A stretch of 64,000 bases of DNA from Mantamonas sphyraenae STR306 (GCA_026936335.1 JAPMXV010000049.1:496001-560000); one strand, 5' to 3'; shown: positions 53,625 to 64,000, numbered from the stretch's first letter. Program-made: numbers and translations. The notes: generated from the sequence alone by a model not told the origin.

Positions 53625-55444
53625 TCAGATTGAGATTGGCATCGGCGTGGAGCCCGACGACCTCCCTTGCAGGTGTCTCCTGTCCTTCCCACGCTTCTTC
53701 TTCCGCTTCTTGGTTGTGGAATGCACTGCGCGTGCAGACGGGGTCGACACATCTTCGGTTTGCTGCGTGCCGATCTTGGGCGAAGCAATTCCCTGGATAT
53801 CCCAATAGTCGTCGGGAGGGCGCTCTGGCGAATGGTCTGCACGATGGCGGCTGCACTCGTTGCACAGCTCGGCTGCTTCCTGTGTGGAGTAGCCCATGCC
53901 ACGATAAAACTTGGCGCACTCTGTACACTCGTAGCCGCCCAGTTGCTCGCGTGCCGCCTTGCCACGCACCACCTCCTTTACACGTGTGGGTACCGTCCTC
54001 TCGGGTGCTGCGCTCGTTGCTGGATGGCCACCCAGCACGTCCTTGCCGCCTTTGCCGATTACAGGCGACGGCTGTGTGGCAGAGACCCCCGATCCTTGCG
54101 AGAGCACCAGATCGTCGTCTTCCAACCATCCGCTGTCCTTCAGCTCCTCTGCAAGCCTGTCTGCGCTTGCTTGGCTGCTTACCACGGCCTCTGTGTCCAT
54201 CTCTTCAAATAGATGGCGCTTCGAGTGCTTCCGCGCCAACTTGAACTTGCTGCTGCCCGCGGCGCTGCTGCTTGTACTCCCTACGCTTACACTGGGTGAT
54301 GGCCCACCTTGCACTGCGCGGCGTGGCCCCGTCCCTCCCACCACTCTGCTTTCCAGGATGGGGCTGGCTCGGCTCGCCTGCGAAAGAAACATCCTGTCTG
54401 CATCCTCATCCTCGTCGTCGTCTTCGCCTTCTCCCTCGTCTCGTGTGCCACGTCCGCTGATGCCACTCTTTCTTCCCTTGGTTGCAATGCGTGCGTCCCA
54501 TTCTGCCTCTGCCTCGTAGCTGTTGTCAAACTCGCTAAACCGGCTACCGTCTGCCACCTTGTGCCTCTGGTGTGCGTTTACCAGCGCAAGCAACTCTTCA
54601 TGCTCTCTGTCCTCCTCCTCGTCATCTTCCTCCTCCTCTTCCTTCGCCTCTTCCTCCGCCGCCCCGTCCTGGTCACGGGTTGTGTTGGCAACCACCCTCT
54701 GTCGCTTTGGCGGCGTCTCTGCAACTACCAACACGGCACTTGTCTGCGAGTCCCCTGCCTCTGCCACTGCCTTTTCAAAGCTGACGTGCTTCGTCGATGA
54801 CCCGTTGTTCGTGCTCTTGCCTTTTCCGTTCCCCTCCTCGTGATCCAGCTTGCGTTTCCGCGTGCCACTGCCATGTCGCTTGCGATGGCTGTTCTCACTG
54901 GTGCTTGTTGCAGGTGGAGGTGTGTTTCCAAACACCGCTGGCGAGAGCTGTACGGAGCGCTGAACTGGCGACGACGTCTCCTCGCCTCCTTCCTGCATGT
55001 CCTCCTCCTCCCTGTGTCGAGACTGCTCCCGCTCTAACCTGCGCTTGATTCGTGCGTACTTGTCTCTCCACCGTTGCACCTGCGCTTCCGCTTCGTGAAG
55101 CGCCGCGTGCAGGCGGTTTTGTTCTCCCAGCAAGCCCAGCAACCTGTTCGCCTGAGCCTTCTGCTCACCCACCTGACCCTTTAGCAGTTCGTTCTCCCTC
55201 CTCAGAGCTGCATGTATGTCGTGCCGAGTGTTTTGCATGTCGTTCGCCACGTGTGTCAGCCTCCTTGCCCGACATTGGATCCTTCTCAACACGGTTCCCG
55301 AGAACGCGCCAATCGCTCACCTGAGAGTTCCTGCGCCACTCCGTTCTCTACAGCCTGCTGCAGCGACGCCATCGCCCCACTCAGCCATCCATGTGTGGTG
55401 CCTCCCTCTGCACCACTCCCACGTGCACCCTGCTCATCTGCCAT
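53625..55444 (-). CDS. CtIP/Sae2/Com1 DNA end-resection factor (one intron near the 5' end)
   Basis: N-terminal coiled coil, a disordered middle, and the C-terminal EVVRGKAAREQLGGYECTECAKFY..CSRHR..PPDDYWDI (CxxC and RHR motifs). Confidence 0.88.
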
Positions 55445-56450: not shown

Positions 56451-59400
56451 TCAACGAATCGAAATGATGTCGTTCAACGACCCTGCGCCTGTGTTTCCAC
56501 CAAAGATCACTACTTTGTGCTCCAGGTCGTCTGTCGTGCTGATACCCTTGCCCTTGCCCTTGCCTTTGCCGTCTTCGCCCTCGCTTTCCAGCCCCTCCAC
56601 TCGGAACAGATCTTCGTTGACCATGATCGGCGCAAGACACGCTCCGTACCGTCCCGCAGGCTCCGTTCCAAACATCTGCACCTTGGTCGACCACGTCTTG
56701 CCCGGCACATCAAGAATGTGTACGTCGTGGAACGCGCTGACGCAATCCTTGGTGCCACCGTACACGAGCATCTGCTTGCCCAGAGCACACGCCACCGCTC
56801 CCTCCCGTTCAGACGGCCCATACCCGCCACCCCAGCTTGGGTTGGCTCCACACCGGTTTGTTCTCGTCTGGACTAAGATAGTACACGTCGTTGCACACTC
56901 CCTTTTTCGTTCGGCCGCCAAAAATGACCACCGTTCCGTCCACAACCACCATTGTGTGCCCCCGTCGTGCCGACGGCTTGGAGCCCTTTGGTTTGATCTT
57001 TCCCCACGCAAACTGGTTACATCGCAGCACGTGCAGGTCGTCCAACAGGCCGCTGTTGTTCTCGCCACCAAAGATGTACAAGTCGTTGCCCACCGTCACC
57101 GACGCATGGTGTGCACGCTCTGCCGGCATGTCCCCAGACGTACGCGGGCGCAGCCACATGCCCTCCAGCAGATTGAGCACAAACACGTCGTCGGCATACG
57201 TTGCGTCCTTGCTGTCCGACGCAAACCTCGTTTGTCCACCGTACACAATCAGCGTCCGCCCGCCTCCCAATGCATTGGCTGTATGAAAGGCACGAGGGGC
57301 AGGATAATCCCCTGTCGCTTCCAATTGGCTCGACCGCCATCCGTCGGTCTCCACAACAAATGCATCCTCGTAAAACACTGCCATCTCGTCAAACATGGGA
57401 TCCACCCCTCCAAACAGTAGGATCTCGCTGCCAAACGCGACCATGGATGCTCCCGTGCGCGCCTGTGGCACCAGGCCTTTTGTGGCGTGTGTATTCCAGA
57501 TGGCCGCCAGTGGCTTTTCCTTGGCCAAGCGAATGTTTGTGTTGGCCTTCTTCTTGCCACGTCCAAACAGCCGCGGTGACGATGTCGATGACGACGATGA
57601 CGATGACGACGATTCAGAAATCATGCTGTCCCTGTCAAACAGCCCTCGGAAGTTTTCTGGCTTTTCCATCACCGTCGATCTGCGCCCCATAGGCTGCTCC
57701 GACGACTCCCCATCCGAGAAACGCCTGGCTGTCAAGTTCTTCAACAGTTTCGCTTCCTGACTTGCCATGGTCGTCTCCTCGGAGGCACCGTCGTCATTGC
57801 CGTCACTTTGTGTTCCCTCCCCGCCCTCGCTCTTCGCGGCCACCTTGCTCGGCAGCTCACCCACCCGTTGGGACGTTGGGATCTCCTCTACAGGTGCAGC
57901 TGGCATTGTTGGCAAGTCGTCGCCACGGCCAAACAGTCGTGTCAGCCTGTTGCGTCGCGACTTGGCACGTGGAAACGCTGCCAGGACGTTCTCCTCGTTT
58001 GGCTTCTCCACTGCCTTGGCCAGCACCTCTTTCGTCTTTTCGTCCACCTGCATTTTGGTGTGAGCAACAGATGGACGCCTTCCGCGTGGCGCCGAACGCC
58101 CAAGTGTCGGGTGCTCCAGTTCTTTGCTGTCCGATAACGACGACGACGACGACGACGTTGACTTGACTGACTTGGGGCTGCCCATCCCAGGCATCATCAT
58201 CGACAGCTTCAATCCTCTCGAACGCTCTGCAATCGAAGGAGACTGTGTCTGCTGCTCCTTCGCCTTTGCCTCGGCTTCCGCCTCCGCTTCCGCTGCGGCG
58301 GCCTCCAGGACACCTTGAACGCGTTCGTCCACACTCATGGTTGTCTTCTTTGTTGGTGGCCTGCGCTTTGGCCTGCCTGCGCGACCTTTTGTTGGATGCG
58401 ACAGTTTCTTGGGTTCCACTGCCTTCTTAATGGGAGGTCCTCCACCTCCCATGCCTGGCATCATCATGGGCCCGCCCATTGGGATGGCAAGCCCTGCCGC
58501 ACGGTCTGCAATGGACTTGGAACGTGTGTGGCCTCCGTCGCTGCCTGGCGACCCCATGGGGATGGCAAGACCTGCAGCACGTTCTGCGATCGATTTCGTG
58601 CGATTGTGGCCGCCGTCACTACCTGGCGAGCCCATCGGGATGGTCAAGCCACCCATGCGTGCAGCCACACCCACGTTGGGACTCGAGCTACTGCTGCTGG
58701 AGCCTGTGTCTTCCACAGACACGGTCACAGAGGTTGCGATTTCCTCAACAGCCTTCTGTGCCTCGGCTTCCGCCGCGGATGCGTCCAGAATGCCCTTGAC
58801 GCGTTCGTCCACACTCATGGTTGTCTTCTTTGTTGGTGGCCTGCGCTTTGGCCTGCCTGCGCGACCCTTTGTCGGATGCGACAGCTTCTTGGGTTCCGTG
58901 GCCTTCTTCTTGATGGGAGGTCCTCCACCTCCCATGCCTGGCATCATCATGGGCCCACCCATTGGGATAGCAAGGCCTGCCGCACGGTCTGCAATGGACT
59001 TGGAACGTGTGTGTCCTCCGTCACTGCCAGGCGAACCCATGGGGATGGCAAGACCTGCAGCACGTTCTGCGATCGATTTCGTGCGATTGTGGCCTCCATC
59101 GCTGTCCATGTTGCTGTTGGGCGAGCTGTCGGACTCGGTTGCTGCTGGCGTTGTCGAAATCTTGGGTGGCGACTGTGCGCTGAGGGCGCCAAAGTTGCGC
59201 AGCTCGCCGAGATCCACGCGCTGGGATCGAGGACGCGCACGTCCACTCTTTACACGTTCGATGGCGCTGATGGCTTTCTTTGGCGCAAGTTTGGTCTTGA
59301 GGTCCGTATGAAGCTTGTTGAGGTGTTCTCCAAACAGCTCGGTCACGATTGCGTCAAAGGTGTCTGCCGGGGCGTCTTCGTCGTTCACCTTGAGCGTGGC

Positions 59401-62400
59401 TGCTGTGATCAATCCGTAGTCCAAATCCTCGAGGTACGCGTCGCCGTCGTCGTCCAAGTACGTCTCTGCAATCTGCATGGCCACGTCGTACCGATCTTCC
59501 GACTCTTCGTCTTCTGCGCAGATTTGACGGAATCGCGCGGCCAGCTCGAGCAACTCGAGCGGTTCCACGTCTGCGCTGTGGTCTTTGACGTACGTCCACA
59601 CGTCTGCCACTTTCAATGCGCTCACGACTGGGTCCTGCCACAGCGCAAGCAAAGGTCTCAGGGCCTCCAGCTCGGGATCCGGAGTGGCCTCGTCATCATC
59701 GTTGGTGTTGTCAGTTGCAACGCGATTATAGACGGGCACAGTCGACTCGGTGGCCTTTGTCGATTCCACACTCGGTTCAGGTTGGCTCTCGCTCTCCGCT
59801 GTGGCTGTGGCAGCCTGTGCTTGTGCAGCCGTGGCATCCAAGACGCTCTGGACACGCTCGTCGACGACGACTGTCTTCTTTTTCGTGGGCGGGCGGCGCT
59901 TGGGACGGCCTGCGCGTCGACCTTTGGTCGGATGCTCGAGTTTCTTGGGGGCGGCAGGTTTCTTCTTTGGAGGCGGCCCACCCATTCCTGGCAAACCCAT
60001 GGGGATGCTGAGGCCAGCTGCACGTTGTGCGACTGTGGAGCCGCGCGCACGCCCGCCTGCGGCGGGTGGCGACGATTCTGCGCCTCCAGGAACGCCCATG
60101 GGAATGTTGAGCCCTGCGGCTCGCTGTGAAATGGTGGCGCCACGTGTGCGTCCTCCAGACGTAGGTGGAGATGGAGAGCCACCCATGGCCATTCCCATGC
60201 CCCCGGGAGCTCCCATGGGGATGTTAAGACTTGCAAGGCGCGAAGCTACTGTCGAGCCGCGGCCGCGACGTGGAGGTCCACCGTCCTCCGTGTTCTCGTT
60301 CTTCTGTGCCGCTTCGGCGGCCTGGGCCACAGCCAAACTGGCCTTGATCTGGTCCAACTTTGAGGGCAGACGCTCACGCTTCGCGCCGTCGCCGGTGCTC
60401 GTTGTGCTCGTTGTGCTTGCTTCGTCGGAAGTGGCCGCATCTTTGCCGTCCTCGTTTCCCATCGTCCCCGTGGTCTCAGATGTGGACTCTTGGTCCAACG
60501 TTGCATGATCAGACGCGACAGATGGGGTGGATACAGGCGGTGAAGCTGACTGGCCGGGAAAGGGGATGTTCAAGCCGGCGCTGCGGTCGCCCACGCTCGA
60601 GGCGCCTCGCTTTCGGCCTCCCGAAGGTGGCGGAGGTGACGGACTTCCCATTGGGATGTTGAGGCCTGCAATGCGCGAGGCAACCGTGGAACCACGTCCA
60701 CGTTGTGGGCTGTTGTTGTCCCGTTCCCGGCTCTGAGCCTCCTGTGCAGCCTGTGCCACTGCAAGGTTGGCTTTGATTTGATCCAGTTTGGACTGCGAGC
60801 GCTGCTTGGGAGCATCTTCTTGCTTCTGTGTTGTCTCTGCCTCTTTGTCGTTGCCAGATGTGTTTGGTGTCGGCATGCTCTCCTGCGCTGCGGAGGCTGT
60901 GTCCACTTGCGCAACATCTGCAGTAGCTGCAGTAGCTGCAGTGGCTGCGGCCTTGCTGCTGGTGGATTCGTCGTCGGTGTTGCTCACGACTGCGCGGCGT
61001 TGCTGATTCAGCGAGCGTTGCAGGTTCAGCAAGCGTGGCATGTGTTTGCTCACTTGCTTCGTGTCCAGATCCAACTGGACGCCCAGGTTGCACATGTTGC
61101 TCTGTCTTCGGTTGCCTTTGCTCTGTTGCCACGCATCAACACGAGTGAACGGCCCTCGTACGTTCTGCACGTCGCCTTTCACCTGGTTCAGCCTTTCAAA
61201 CGCCTTTCCCGAGCCACTCTTTTTGGCAATCGACGTGGGGGCGTCCGAGTCGCCGTATTTGGCCGCCAGGCGCTCGATCTTGCTCGACGATGTCACCAGA
61301 GTGTGTGTCTCGTGACTGTACTCCGACAGCATCTGTTCCCACACCTTCCATCCTGTGCTTCGCGCAGCCTGTTCTTCCTCCTGCCTCTTCCTCTCTGCCT
61401 CTTCCTCCTGCCGCTTCCGCTCTGCCTCTTCCTCTTGCCGCTTCCTCTCCGCCTCTTCCTCCTGCCTCTTCCTCTCTGCCTCTTCCTCCTGCCGCTTCCG
61501 CTCCGCCTCTTCCTCTTGCCTCTTCCGCTCCGCCTCCTCCTCCTGCCTCTTCCGCTCCGCCTCCTCCTCCTGCCTCTTCCGCTCCGCCTCCTCCTCCTGC
61601 CTCTTCCGCTCCGCCTCCTCCTCCTGCCTCTTCCTCTCTGCCTCAGCTTCCGCTTGCATGGTCTTGTACACGGCACGGGCTGCACGACCGCGCTCAAGCC
61701 GTTGCAACAGCTGCACGGCTGCTCGCATGTTGCGAAACCCCTTGCGTTGAATGCGTCCTCGTACGATGCGCTGGATGTTGCGTGCACTACGCTGCTGCCG
61801 AGCCTGCTGCCGGCCTTGGTGCCCGCGCACGACGCGCTGCACCTGCATGGCTGCGTCTCGCTTGGCAACAAACGCGCGTCGTGCACACATACGCCGCACT
61901 GCACTTTGTACCACCACAGCTGCTGAAATACGCCGCTTCGCTTCGGCTCGCACAAGGAACCCGCGTGCAACTGCCTGCATCTTGACCACAGCGACGCGCA
62001 TCAACTTGAACCGCCGCCTCTGCAGGCACCCACGCAGCCAGCTTTGGATACGTGCAGCGACATCATGCAGAGCCTCTTTGCGCTTCTCGTCCATCACTGC
62101 GTACTTGTCCTCCTTCAGAAACACTTTGCTCTTGCCAAGCAAAAAGTCACCTTCCTCAAGTCCCGCCGTTTCCAACAGCAACGACACTGCTTGATCGAAT
62201 CCGTTGCTTGTGTCCAGCTGTTCGCGTCCGGCCACACAGCCATATCGCTCCAGGAACTCCAGGTAGTCTCGCCGCACGGGGAAGCCTGCCTTGCGGATGC
62301 GAATGGACTCCAGCATGCCTGCGTACCGCAGCTGCCTGAGCACAAGGTCGGCGTCAAACAAGCTTGCGCTTTTTTGCATGTTTGGCTTGATGCACCGGAT

Positions 62401-64000
62401 GTAGTGCGTCTCTGTCGCTGCCAGTGTCTTGATCAGCGTGCTCAGCTGTGACTTGAACTGTCCACCCACAGTCTGCACCTTCTTTCCGCCTGTGCTTCCT
62501 CGCTTGCTGCCCGACCTTCCACTATCTTCCGACTTGCTGTTGCTCGATTTGTCACCCAGCTCCTGCTGCTTGCGTTCCCACAGCGACAGCTTCTTGGCCG
62601 GCTTGGCTGCCTCCTTTGCGGCCGTGGCCTCCTCCTCCTTGCGCCTCGCCTCCTCCTCCGCTGCCTCTTTGTCCACAAACATGTCGCTAATGAGCGAGAG
62701 TTGCGAGGTGCGCATGAGCTTGAGCAGATCGTCTGGCACGCTGTCCTTATTCTTGTCCAGAAACCCGCGGTTGTGGTAGACCACCTCGCCGGCGTAATGA
62801 AGCACACCAAACGAGTCCTTTGACCCGTTGATCGAGTTGTAGTGTGGGTTTTCGCCGTGGTTTTGGTGCAGCTTTGCCACCAGTGTCTCGTCCGTGGCTT
62901 TGGGGAACCGCGACTCTTCGTCCAGGAGAGACAGCACGCCCATCTTGGATTCGATCATATGCAAACACTCGACGTTGTCCACAAAATCAATGTCCTGCCA
63001 AGTGATACCCTCGTCCTTGTACGCCTGTTGCTCCTGCTTGAAAATGTGGTTGTTGAACAACTGCTGCAACTTTTCGTTGGCGTAGTTGATGCACAGCTGT
63101 TCGAAGGAATTGACATCGAAGCTTTCAAAACCAAAGATGTCTAGGATGCCGATGAAGTTGGCATAGTCGTCATTGGCCATGACGAGGTTGATCTGCATGA
63201 TGAGCCAGTCAAACAGCTTGCCGTAGATGTCCTTGCTGAGGGCGTCGCGCGACTCGATAGCCTTGTCGACGCTGAGGGGGATGGTAAATACCTCGCCGCG
63301 CATGGTCATTTCGCGCTGTGTCAGGGCGGTGACGAGTTCGGCCGTGTCGACGCCCAACAGACTGCATGCTGCCTCGACGGCGTCCATGGCATTAATCTCG
63401 GCGCATTCGTTGTTCGACGCGTCCATACGGCCGTCAAAGGAGATGTTGCCCAGATGCAGGATGCCGGACAGGATCTGCCAAATTTGAATCTGCAGTTGCG
63501 TGTCGATGCCAAGAACGCCCATTGCCGTCTTGAGATCATGAAAATCCTGTGCGTCGTCCACGTTGTTGACATTGTAGCATTGGCTGCAGTTCAGATAGTG
63601 GTAGTCCTCGGGCTGGCCAAGCATGAGCTCCTTTCGCAGGGCAGCGTCTACGCCCCGCAGAAGCTGGTAGAACACATGGTAGTTGCGCTCACCCACAGCC
63701 TGGTAGACCAAACGTGACTTTTCGAGCAGGTAGTTGACTACGTTTGCGCCAACAATCTGGCCCGAGCGGTTGAAGAGCACCTTGATGAATTTGCCAAAGC
63801 GAGACGAGTTGTCATTGCGCAACGTTTTTGCGTTGCCAAACGCCTCGAGGACAGGATTGGCCTGGAGGATCTGATCCTGGACTGTGCTTTGGACACCCGA
63901 GCAGGCAGCCATGTACTGTAGGACAATCTTTGTGGCCTCGGTTTTGCCGGCTCCGCTTTCACCGCTAGGATGCACACGAGGATAGCGTATGGAAGAGTGT
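56451..64000 (-). CDS. Myosin (5' end outside the window): motor, IQ motifs, SAH, repeat-rich tail with an RGS domain and CPI motifs, C-terminal Kelch repeats; apparent 1-nt deletion near 56831
   Basis: GESGAGKT, LEAFGNAKT.RNDNSSRFGK, LDIFGFE, FEQLCINYANEKLQ and RCIKPN, followed by ~6 IQ motifs. Kelch GG repeats continue into the 56451-57071 frame. There is an acceptor CCTAG near 63966. Confidence 0.95.
58321..59098. repeat. Near-identical ~300-bp direct repeat (58321-58617 and 58801-59098) in the myosin tail
   Basis: The same sequence recurs at a 480-bp offset and encodes the GGHNRTKSIAERAAG..LSHPTKGRAGRPKRRPPTKKTTMSVDER module. Confidence 0.92.
61372..61641. repeat. 27-bp coding tandem repeat (~10 copies) encoding EEEAERKRQ, a predicted single alpha-helix
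   Basis: Directly visible in both the DNA and the translation. Confidence 0.92.

Follow-up and report, generated by a model that had tools for sequence, protein, structure and literature searches.

Can a myosin heavy chain bear, within its own tail, the peptide with which adaptor proteins bind actin capping protein? The question is raised by a gene of Mantamonas sphyraenae, a marine, deep-branching flagellate and a member of CRuMs, a group placed at the base of Amorphea (PMC10492846); here a 64,000-nucleotide stretch of DNA (the whole of which we call the window) encodes a giant unconventional myosin with all catalytic signatures. Four short segments of its tail resemble the capping-protein-interaction (CPI) motif, the consensus of which is LxHxTxxRPK(6x)P (PMC2897767; PMC12803934). 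In established CPI motifs mutation of the central Arg8, whose partner in the beta subunit of capping protein is Asp44, abolishes binding (PMC2897767; its role is also treated in PMC12803934), Pro9 is the point at which the bound peptide bends (PMC2897767), and alteration of K987/R989 in CARMIL1, at CPI positions 6 and 8, gives the standard binding-dead mutant (PMC3784379). A review from 2025 names CARMIL, CD2AP/CIN85, CapZIP and FAM21 as carriers of the motif (PMC12803934).

The balance of the sequence evidence tips slightly towards the four segments being genuine CPI motifs in a new carrier architecture, and we give a little better than an even chance to the prediction that the peptides would bind, in the manner of known CPI motifs, to the groove of the capping-protein beta subunit. 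The motif itself is already known, and what is new is its carrier and its arrangement in four copies. All four segments lie in a single frame of the main myosin open reading frame (ORF; Table 1) and have the common form L-x-H-P-T-x-G-R...R-R-P. An earlier interpretation of this DNA, made from its letters alone (the sequence-only reading), had given the CPI consensus and its carriers as the literature does (PMC2897767; PMC12803934), and had placed four CPI-like motifs in the tail, each followed by V-D-E-R/K; we find the motifs there, within a few bases of where it put them, and the V-D-E box after 4/4 of them, beginning 24-25 residues past the Leu of the motif, as VDER in three copies and VDEK in one. 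Its match to the consensus stands for L1, H3, T5 and Arg8, which are present in every copy, and for three of the four copies at position 6 (Lys, except in copy 4, which has Leu) and at Pro17, when the published spacing, L.H.T..R(8x)P, is required. The motif segments have a hydrophobic fraction of 0.12-0.20 and a net positive charge, both of these being composition measures only, and the tail that bears them is probably disordered.

When the four copies are aligned, K, L, H, P, T, G, R, RRP, V-D-E and one Leu are the same in all of them. Over 52 residues copy 4 has 31% identity to copy 1; set beside copy 2, it agrees at all four consensus positions tested and at 13 of the 48 others (Fisher p = 0.009). 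At L, H, P, T, G and R there are synonymous codon differences among the copies. This retention of the consensus positions, together with the synonymous codon changes, argues for selection on the peptide and not for mere recent copying. A recent internal duplication, which had also been proposed from the sequence, is real: its two units contain one CPI-like motif apiece (copies 2 and 3) along with two R-repeats, and show 92.6% DNA identity across 340 nt. Of the motif copies, 1 and 4 are the older ones.

Chance expectation was computed for the composition of the tail, with 20,000 shuffles. In a tail of this composition 0.0047 matches to L.H.T..R would be expected, and 3.6e-4 with Pro17 added; at least one match arose in 100/20,000 shuffles for the shorter pattern and in 12/20,000 for the longer one. 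The four copies are paralogous repeats, and so they do not count as four independent events in this estimate. We also searched the genome, which comprises 25,061,354 bases in 78 contigs (~59% GC). The pattern L.H.T..R(4-7x)RRP, back-translated, gave 27 matches, as against 28 for a reversed control, and the only in-frame coding matches genome-wide were the four in the myosin; the pattern LxHxTxxR[PA][KR] gave four matches genome-wide, of which none (0/4) was coding. Separately, a tandem repeat on two contigs (C69:312,492-314,058 and C77:5,356-10,110), with copy starts mostly 152 nt or multiples of this apart, matched the degenerate motif pattern with the translation LSHSTFCRLHVCRSRP in shifting frames; because the matches fall in changing frames, this repeat is probably non-coding.

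Peptides of solved structure allow a more direct comparison. A profile of the four copies and their flanks, searched against 177,635 sequences of the PDB, returned the CPI 23-mer of CKIP-1 (3AA1 chain C) as its first match (E 0.17) and the capping-protein-binding region of CARMIL1 as its eighth (E 0.58); a 34-column profile of the motif placed the CKIP-1 peptide second (E 1.9). A single 47-residue motif peptide found no match in the PDB. As a calibration, the CKIP-1 peptide was itself used as the query and retrieved no other CPI peptide at E <= 10, so that HMMER is also unable to link bona fide CPI motifs across families.

If the motifs are genuine, a partner with an intact groove should be present, and the genome does encode both capping-protein subunits, alpha and beta, in intron-containing genes, the exons of which were searched and aligned singly with database homologues. 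The beta subunit retains equivalents of Arg15, Asp44, Asp63, Tyr64, Asp67 and Tyr79, which are the residues that contact CPI peptides (PMC4598739; PMC2897767); Ser41 has become Ala. The genome also encodes a CARMIL homologue (contig C42, ~71,200-74,850, minus strand; locus L040 3229-6844), with a Carm_PH-like exon and leucine-rich-repeat (LRR) exons. Its Carm_PH match is sub-threshold (22.9 bits), and its LRR region matches the CARMIL1 structure 4k17 (E 1.7e-19) far better than it does other LRR proteins. The last exon of this gene, running from the LRRs through a long poly-proline tail to the stop, contains no LxHxT motif, and the homologue has no CPI region, CARMIL-specific interaction (CSI) region or CARMIL_C match. 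Thus the carrier known from amoebae and animals lacks the motif here, and the myosin has four CPI-like copies. This gives circumstantial support to the earlier suggestion that the function of the adaptor has been internalised by the motor.

Were the motifs to act as CPI motifs, each peptide would lie as an extended strand in the groove of the beta subunit, with its Arg8 paired to beta Asp44, and one heavy chain could hold up to four capping-protein heterodimers. CPI-bound capping protein keeps its actin-binding face free (PMC12803934), so the myosin could transport it along filaments; alternatively, the myosin might bind capping protein already seated on a barbed end and loosen its grip there, in the way that CARMIL does. 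The motor here would then have the capping-protein-binding module that sits on the adaptor CARMIL in amoebae. A stronger proposal, which we put forward as doubtful, is that with a CARMIL homologue devoid of the binding region, the four-motif myosin is the main capping-protein ligand in this lineage, unlike the situation in amoebae and animals. If this were true, the motor could transport several dimers of capping protein towards barbed ends, and the tail could grip up to four capped barbed ends while the motor walks another filament; a motor working in this way would collect and sort the ends of filaments, which is a principle undescribed for any myosin.

Several observations weigh against reading the segments as CPI motifs. 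The match claimed in the sequence-only reading fails at Pro9-Lys10, a pair found in none of the four copies (0/4), which instead have R-A, A-G, A-G and S-A in turn, and copy 4 has Pro16 in place of Pro17 in addition to its non-basic position 6. The similarity to solved CPI peptides in the PDB is non-significant throughout (E 0.17-1.9), and a 26-column profile of the motif found no match there. Neither of the Pfam models that cover CPI-bearing regions, CARMIL_C (PF16000) and CAP-ZIP_m (PF15255), had a match in the genome (E <= 1 / E <= 10) or in the myosin ORF (E <= 0.1), these models being long and poor at detecting a 17-residue motif. Yeast Inp51, a CPI candidate picked by its sequence, failed to bind capping protein (PMC10651396). 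A rough estimate, rather than a computation, puts the chance expectation for L.H.T..R(8x)P at about two matches per proteome. Finally, no orthologue of the myosin was found by a search with the tail, by a search with the motor or by a metagenome scan.

These points bear on what else the segments might be, and the main rival is that they are basic, proline-rich linear motifs with another job, such as an importin-type nuclear signal, a basic patch for membrane binding, or a site at which a kinase or an SH3-type domain docks; we consider this possible rather than probable. Stretches of KKK or KRRPPTKK flank the core and the segments are net positive, while the neighbouring R-x-[RK]-x-[ST] repeats resemble basophilic kinase sites, which suggests a phospho-regulated module. 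The missing Pro9-Lys10, the failure of the yeast Inp51 look-alike to bind capping protein (PMC10651396) and the weak database similarity to CPI peptides all fit such a motif. However, the invariant L, H, P, T, G, R and RRP are the positions of the CPI motif, and the lysine runs are missing from copy 4; moreover, the carrier is an actin motor, and the beta groove of the prospective partner is conserved. To our knowledge, Leu-x-His-x-Thr also lies outside the usual consensus of nuclear signals and of SH3 ligands.

The repetitive nature of the tail allows a different alternative: that a low-complexity repeat has recently been amplified and has carried the motifs along with it, without specific selection, one chance resemblance having arisen and then been copied. 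Copies 2 and 3 are 92.6% identical duplicates, repeats occur throughout the tail, and the roughly estimated two chance matches per proteome would supply the initial resemblance. Such an origin seems unlikely to us, given that the diverged copies 1 and 4 keep every tested consensus position with their codons changed synonymously, and that the V-D-E box is kept at a fixed distance. Most improbable of all is that the G-R-P core of copies 1-3, with its flanking Arg and Lys, forms an AT-hook-like element that binds nucleic acid. R-G-R-P is the core of AT-hooks, and the A-G-R-P-K-R-R of copies 1-3 does resemble it, but G-R-P is absent from copy 4, the conserved residues are located elsewhere, and the carrier is a cytoskeletal motor. 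With the reservation already made, we retain the reading of the segments as CPI motifs, and turn to the gene that carries them (Table 1).

Table 1. The myosin gene of M. sphyraenae and the elements of its tail, in order from the motor to the C-terminus; nucleotide positions are counted from the first letter of the window.
Feature	Nucleotides	Strand	Residues and remarks
Myosin main exon/ORF	56809..63975	minus	2388 aa from ORF listing; open frame 2401 aa in whole contig
Myosin motor domain, partial	62113..63966	minus	Pfam Myosin_head aa 4-621, E 1.4e-210
IQ-type basic lever region	61660..62094	minus	Pfam IQ match and IQ-like matches; net charge ~+27, aa 651-750
ER/K-rich repeat (EAERKRQEE), ~10x	61372..61659	minus	27-nt tandem repeat
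Second repeat, R-x-[RK]-[GS]-[ST]-[IV]-A-x-R-[AI]-A-G-L-x-I-P-M-G	58198..60702	minus	18 residues, 11 copies
CPI-like motif 1 (CPI-1), LEHPTKGRRAGRPKRRPPT	59884-59940	minus	aa 1346-1364; length and spacing equal to CKIP-1 CPI peptide
Hydrophobic, strongly acidic stretch between CPI-1 and CPI-2	59290..59682	minus	aa ~1432-1562; from composition
Internal duplication	58760-59103 and 58280-58620 (span 58280..59103)	minus	Tandem Repeats Finder and unit comparison
CPI-like motif 2 (CPI-2), LSHPTKGRAGRPKRRPPT	58831-58884	minus	aa 1698-1715; in-frame L.H.T..R match
CPI-like motif 3 (CPI-3), LSHPTKGRAGRPKRRPPT	58351-58404	minus	aa 1858-1875; peptide identical to CPI-2, duplicate of it
CPI-like motif 4 (CPI-4), LEHPTLGRSAPRGRRPS	58069-58119	minus	aa 1953-1969; most diverged copy
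Four V-D-E-R/K boxes	59854-59865, 58801-58812, 58321-58332, 58036-58047	minus	begin short Ala/Glu-rich stretches
C-terminal Kelch beta-propeller	56451..57507	minus	Pfam Kelch families aa 2157-2380; other frame below ~56,830

The encoded protein has, in order, a motor, an IQ region, an ER/K repeat, a long tail of low hydrophobicity and a Kelch propeller. In its motor, an intact P-loop (GESGAGKT), switch I (NDNSSRFGK) and switch II (DIFGFE) place the protein in the myosin superfamily; the first, N-terminal exons of the motor sit past the end of the window. Among tail domains Pfam recognised only IQ and Kelch, with no MyTH4, FERM, Carm_PH or LRR match, and by these domains the protein fits neither the MyTH4-FERM myosins nor CARMIL. 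Tandem Repeats Finder resolved the ER/K region as 10.1 copies of period 27 (61373-61644), and this repeat probably forms a single alpha-helix that extends the lever. The tail that follows it, ~1,280 residues in length, is hydrophobic-poor apart from the acidic stretch (aa 1432-1562), which has a net charge of -22 over aa 1451-1550 and is probably a folded domain. This stretch matched no Pfam family at E <= 0.1, and an RGS-like identity for it has no Pfam support at that threshold.

Is the tail truly coding? It is most simply so, because motor and Kelch domains share one unbroken frame. Its GC content at third codon positions is 0.62-0.66, as against 0.74 in the motor, and is thus less distinctive. 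An open frame of 604 residues also lies opposite the tail on the plus strand (window 58315-60129), with codon-position GC similar to that of the tail frame; this measure therefore cannot settle the frame of the tail, which is settled by the continuity from motor to Kelch. The plus-strand frame is probably a by-product of GC-rich repeats and not a gene. Towards the C-terminus, at ~56,815-56,830 on the minus strand, the main ORF ends in …KLGWRVWAV and a stop, and the Kelch repeat goes on in another frame, …GGGYGPSEREGAV…, with the final blades encoded in an ORF at 56451-57071. We found no GT-AG intron of at least 30 nt that would link the main frame to that of the Kelch continuation, and the change of frame near 56,830 is either an assembly indel in a G-run or a real frameshift.

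The second, 18-residue repeat of the tail starts at aa 1092, 1122, 1237, 1276, 1309, 1629, 1655, 1764, 1790, 1816 and 1909, and from one to three copies of it stand upstream of every CPI-like motif. From its sequence we infer a basophilic kinase-like site joined to an amphipathic stretch; the LKKV of WH2 domains is absent from it. As a speculation, the eleven repeats and the acidic domain are candidate regulatory elements. Downstream of the motifs another resemblance was noticed: at 58018-58060 on the minus strand, and in the three sister copies, the post-motif residues (T-K-x-x-M-x-V-D-E-K-T-K-E-V-L in copy 4) closely match a strand of talin F3, TKDSVMRVDEKTKEVL. The E of ~0.4 puts this match at chance level, and no FERM domain surrounds it.

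Contigs of other sequencing runs were used to check the assembled sequence; these are DNA contigs only, from four runs of one study, and have no bearing on expression or copy number. The CPI-1 and CPI-4 regions were reproduced without differences by contigs of three of the runs. Every short-read contig breaks within the duplication, and the sequence outside the duplication is confirmed. In run X4 a low-depth contig (~6x) covering window 58632-59847 has copy-3-type letters and a 3-nt deletion by CPI-2 (58867-58912); the assembly may have collapsed the two duplicated units into one here, or the contig may come from a strain with another copy number.

The closest relatives of the motor, found by a word search, are MyTH4-FERM myosins of <= 48% identity; no protein exceeded this value, and none with a Kelch-family tail domain was listed. 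A word search with the tail (aa 1030-2130) gave no match, low-complexity words and the length window being able to hide fragments in such a search, and the metagenome scan with a profile of the motif yielded 194 matching stretches and no relatives among them. In 120 related long myosins (270,630 residues) there were no matches to L.H.T..R. That no myosin with a CPI motif had been described was also the expectation of the sequence-only reading, and a full-text literature search found none; Kelch goes unmentioned in the myosin classification papers that we examined. Elsewhere in the window (53625-55292, minus strand) an ORF of 555 residues has a C-terminus of the form C-x-x-C … N-E-C-S-R-H-R … P-P-D-D-Y-W, which, by eye, looks like that of the CtIP/Sae2 family of DNA-end resection.

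Capping protein sets the length to which actin filaments grow, and CPI proteins decide the place and the tightness of capping; the CPI carriers named in the literature that we surveyed are adaptors or scaffolds, and none is a motor. If the motifs of the M. sphyraenae myosin do bind, direct and multivalent binding would couple force generation to barbed-end control within one molecule, and the motif would provide a fresh example of transfer from one protein to another within a pathway. A working CPI system in CRuMs would also widen the known range of such systems, and would help to date the gain or loss of the capping-protein-binding region by CARMIL.

Among known CPI peptides the nearest likeness is to that of CKIP-1 (PLEKHO1, 3AA1 chain C), with which the aligned myosin peptides share LxHPT, Arg8 and RRPPT. 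Motif 1 equals it in length and spacing, and copies 2 and 3, alone among the myosin copies, share its Ala9 in place of Pro. CKIP-1 nevertheless keeps Lys10, where the myosin copies have Gly or Ala, and it is a PH-domain adaptor with one motif, in contrast to the four on a motor heavy chain. The capping-protein-binding region of CARMIL (CPI and CSI) is likewise an extended peptide within an unstructured region beside basic stretches, and the positions equivalent to CARMIL1 K987/R989 (6 and 8) are present in the myosin; unlike CARMIL, however, the myosin has no CSI motif, LRR, PH domain or CARMIL_C match. The fungal proteins Bsp1 and Aim21, the twinfilin tail, Legionella MavH and Samd14 resemble our case in being unrelated proteins with a CPI motif, mostly in unstructured regions, but none of them is a motor and none was found described with four copies.

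In Amoebozoa (Dictyostelium, Acanthamoeba) a myosin is connected to capping protein (PMC12803934), and the link there is indirect, the SH3 domain of myosin I binding the proline-rich tail of CARMIL, which in turn binds capping protein. In M. sphyraenae, by contrast, the motif stands on the heavy chain itself, and the motor is not of class I. The motor domain is nearest to those of the MyTH4-FERM myosins (VII, X, XV), and, like these, the M. sphyraenae protein would take a regulator of barbed ends to the tips of filaments. Delivery of this kind by MyTH4-FERM myosins, through adaptors, is exemplified by Myo15 with Eps8 and by Myo7a with twinfilin-2. Unlike the MyTH4-FERM myosins (VII, X, XV, XXII), the M. 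sphyraenae myosin has neither MyTH4 nor FERM, and its cargo would be bound directly, by CPI motifs in the tail, and not through an adaptor.

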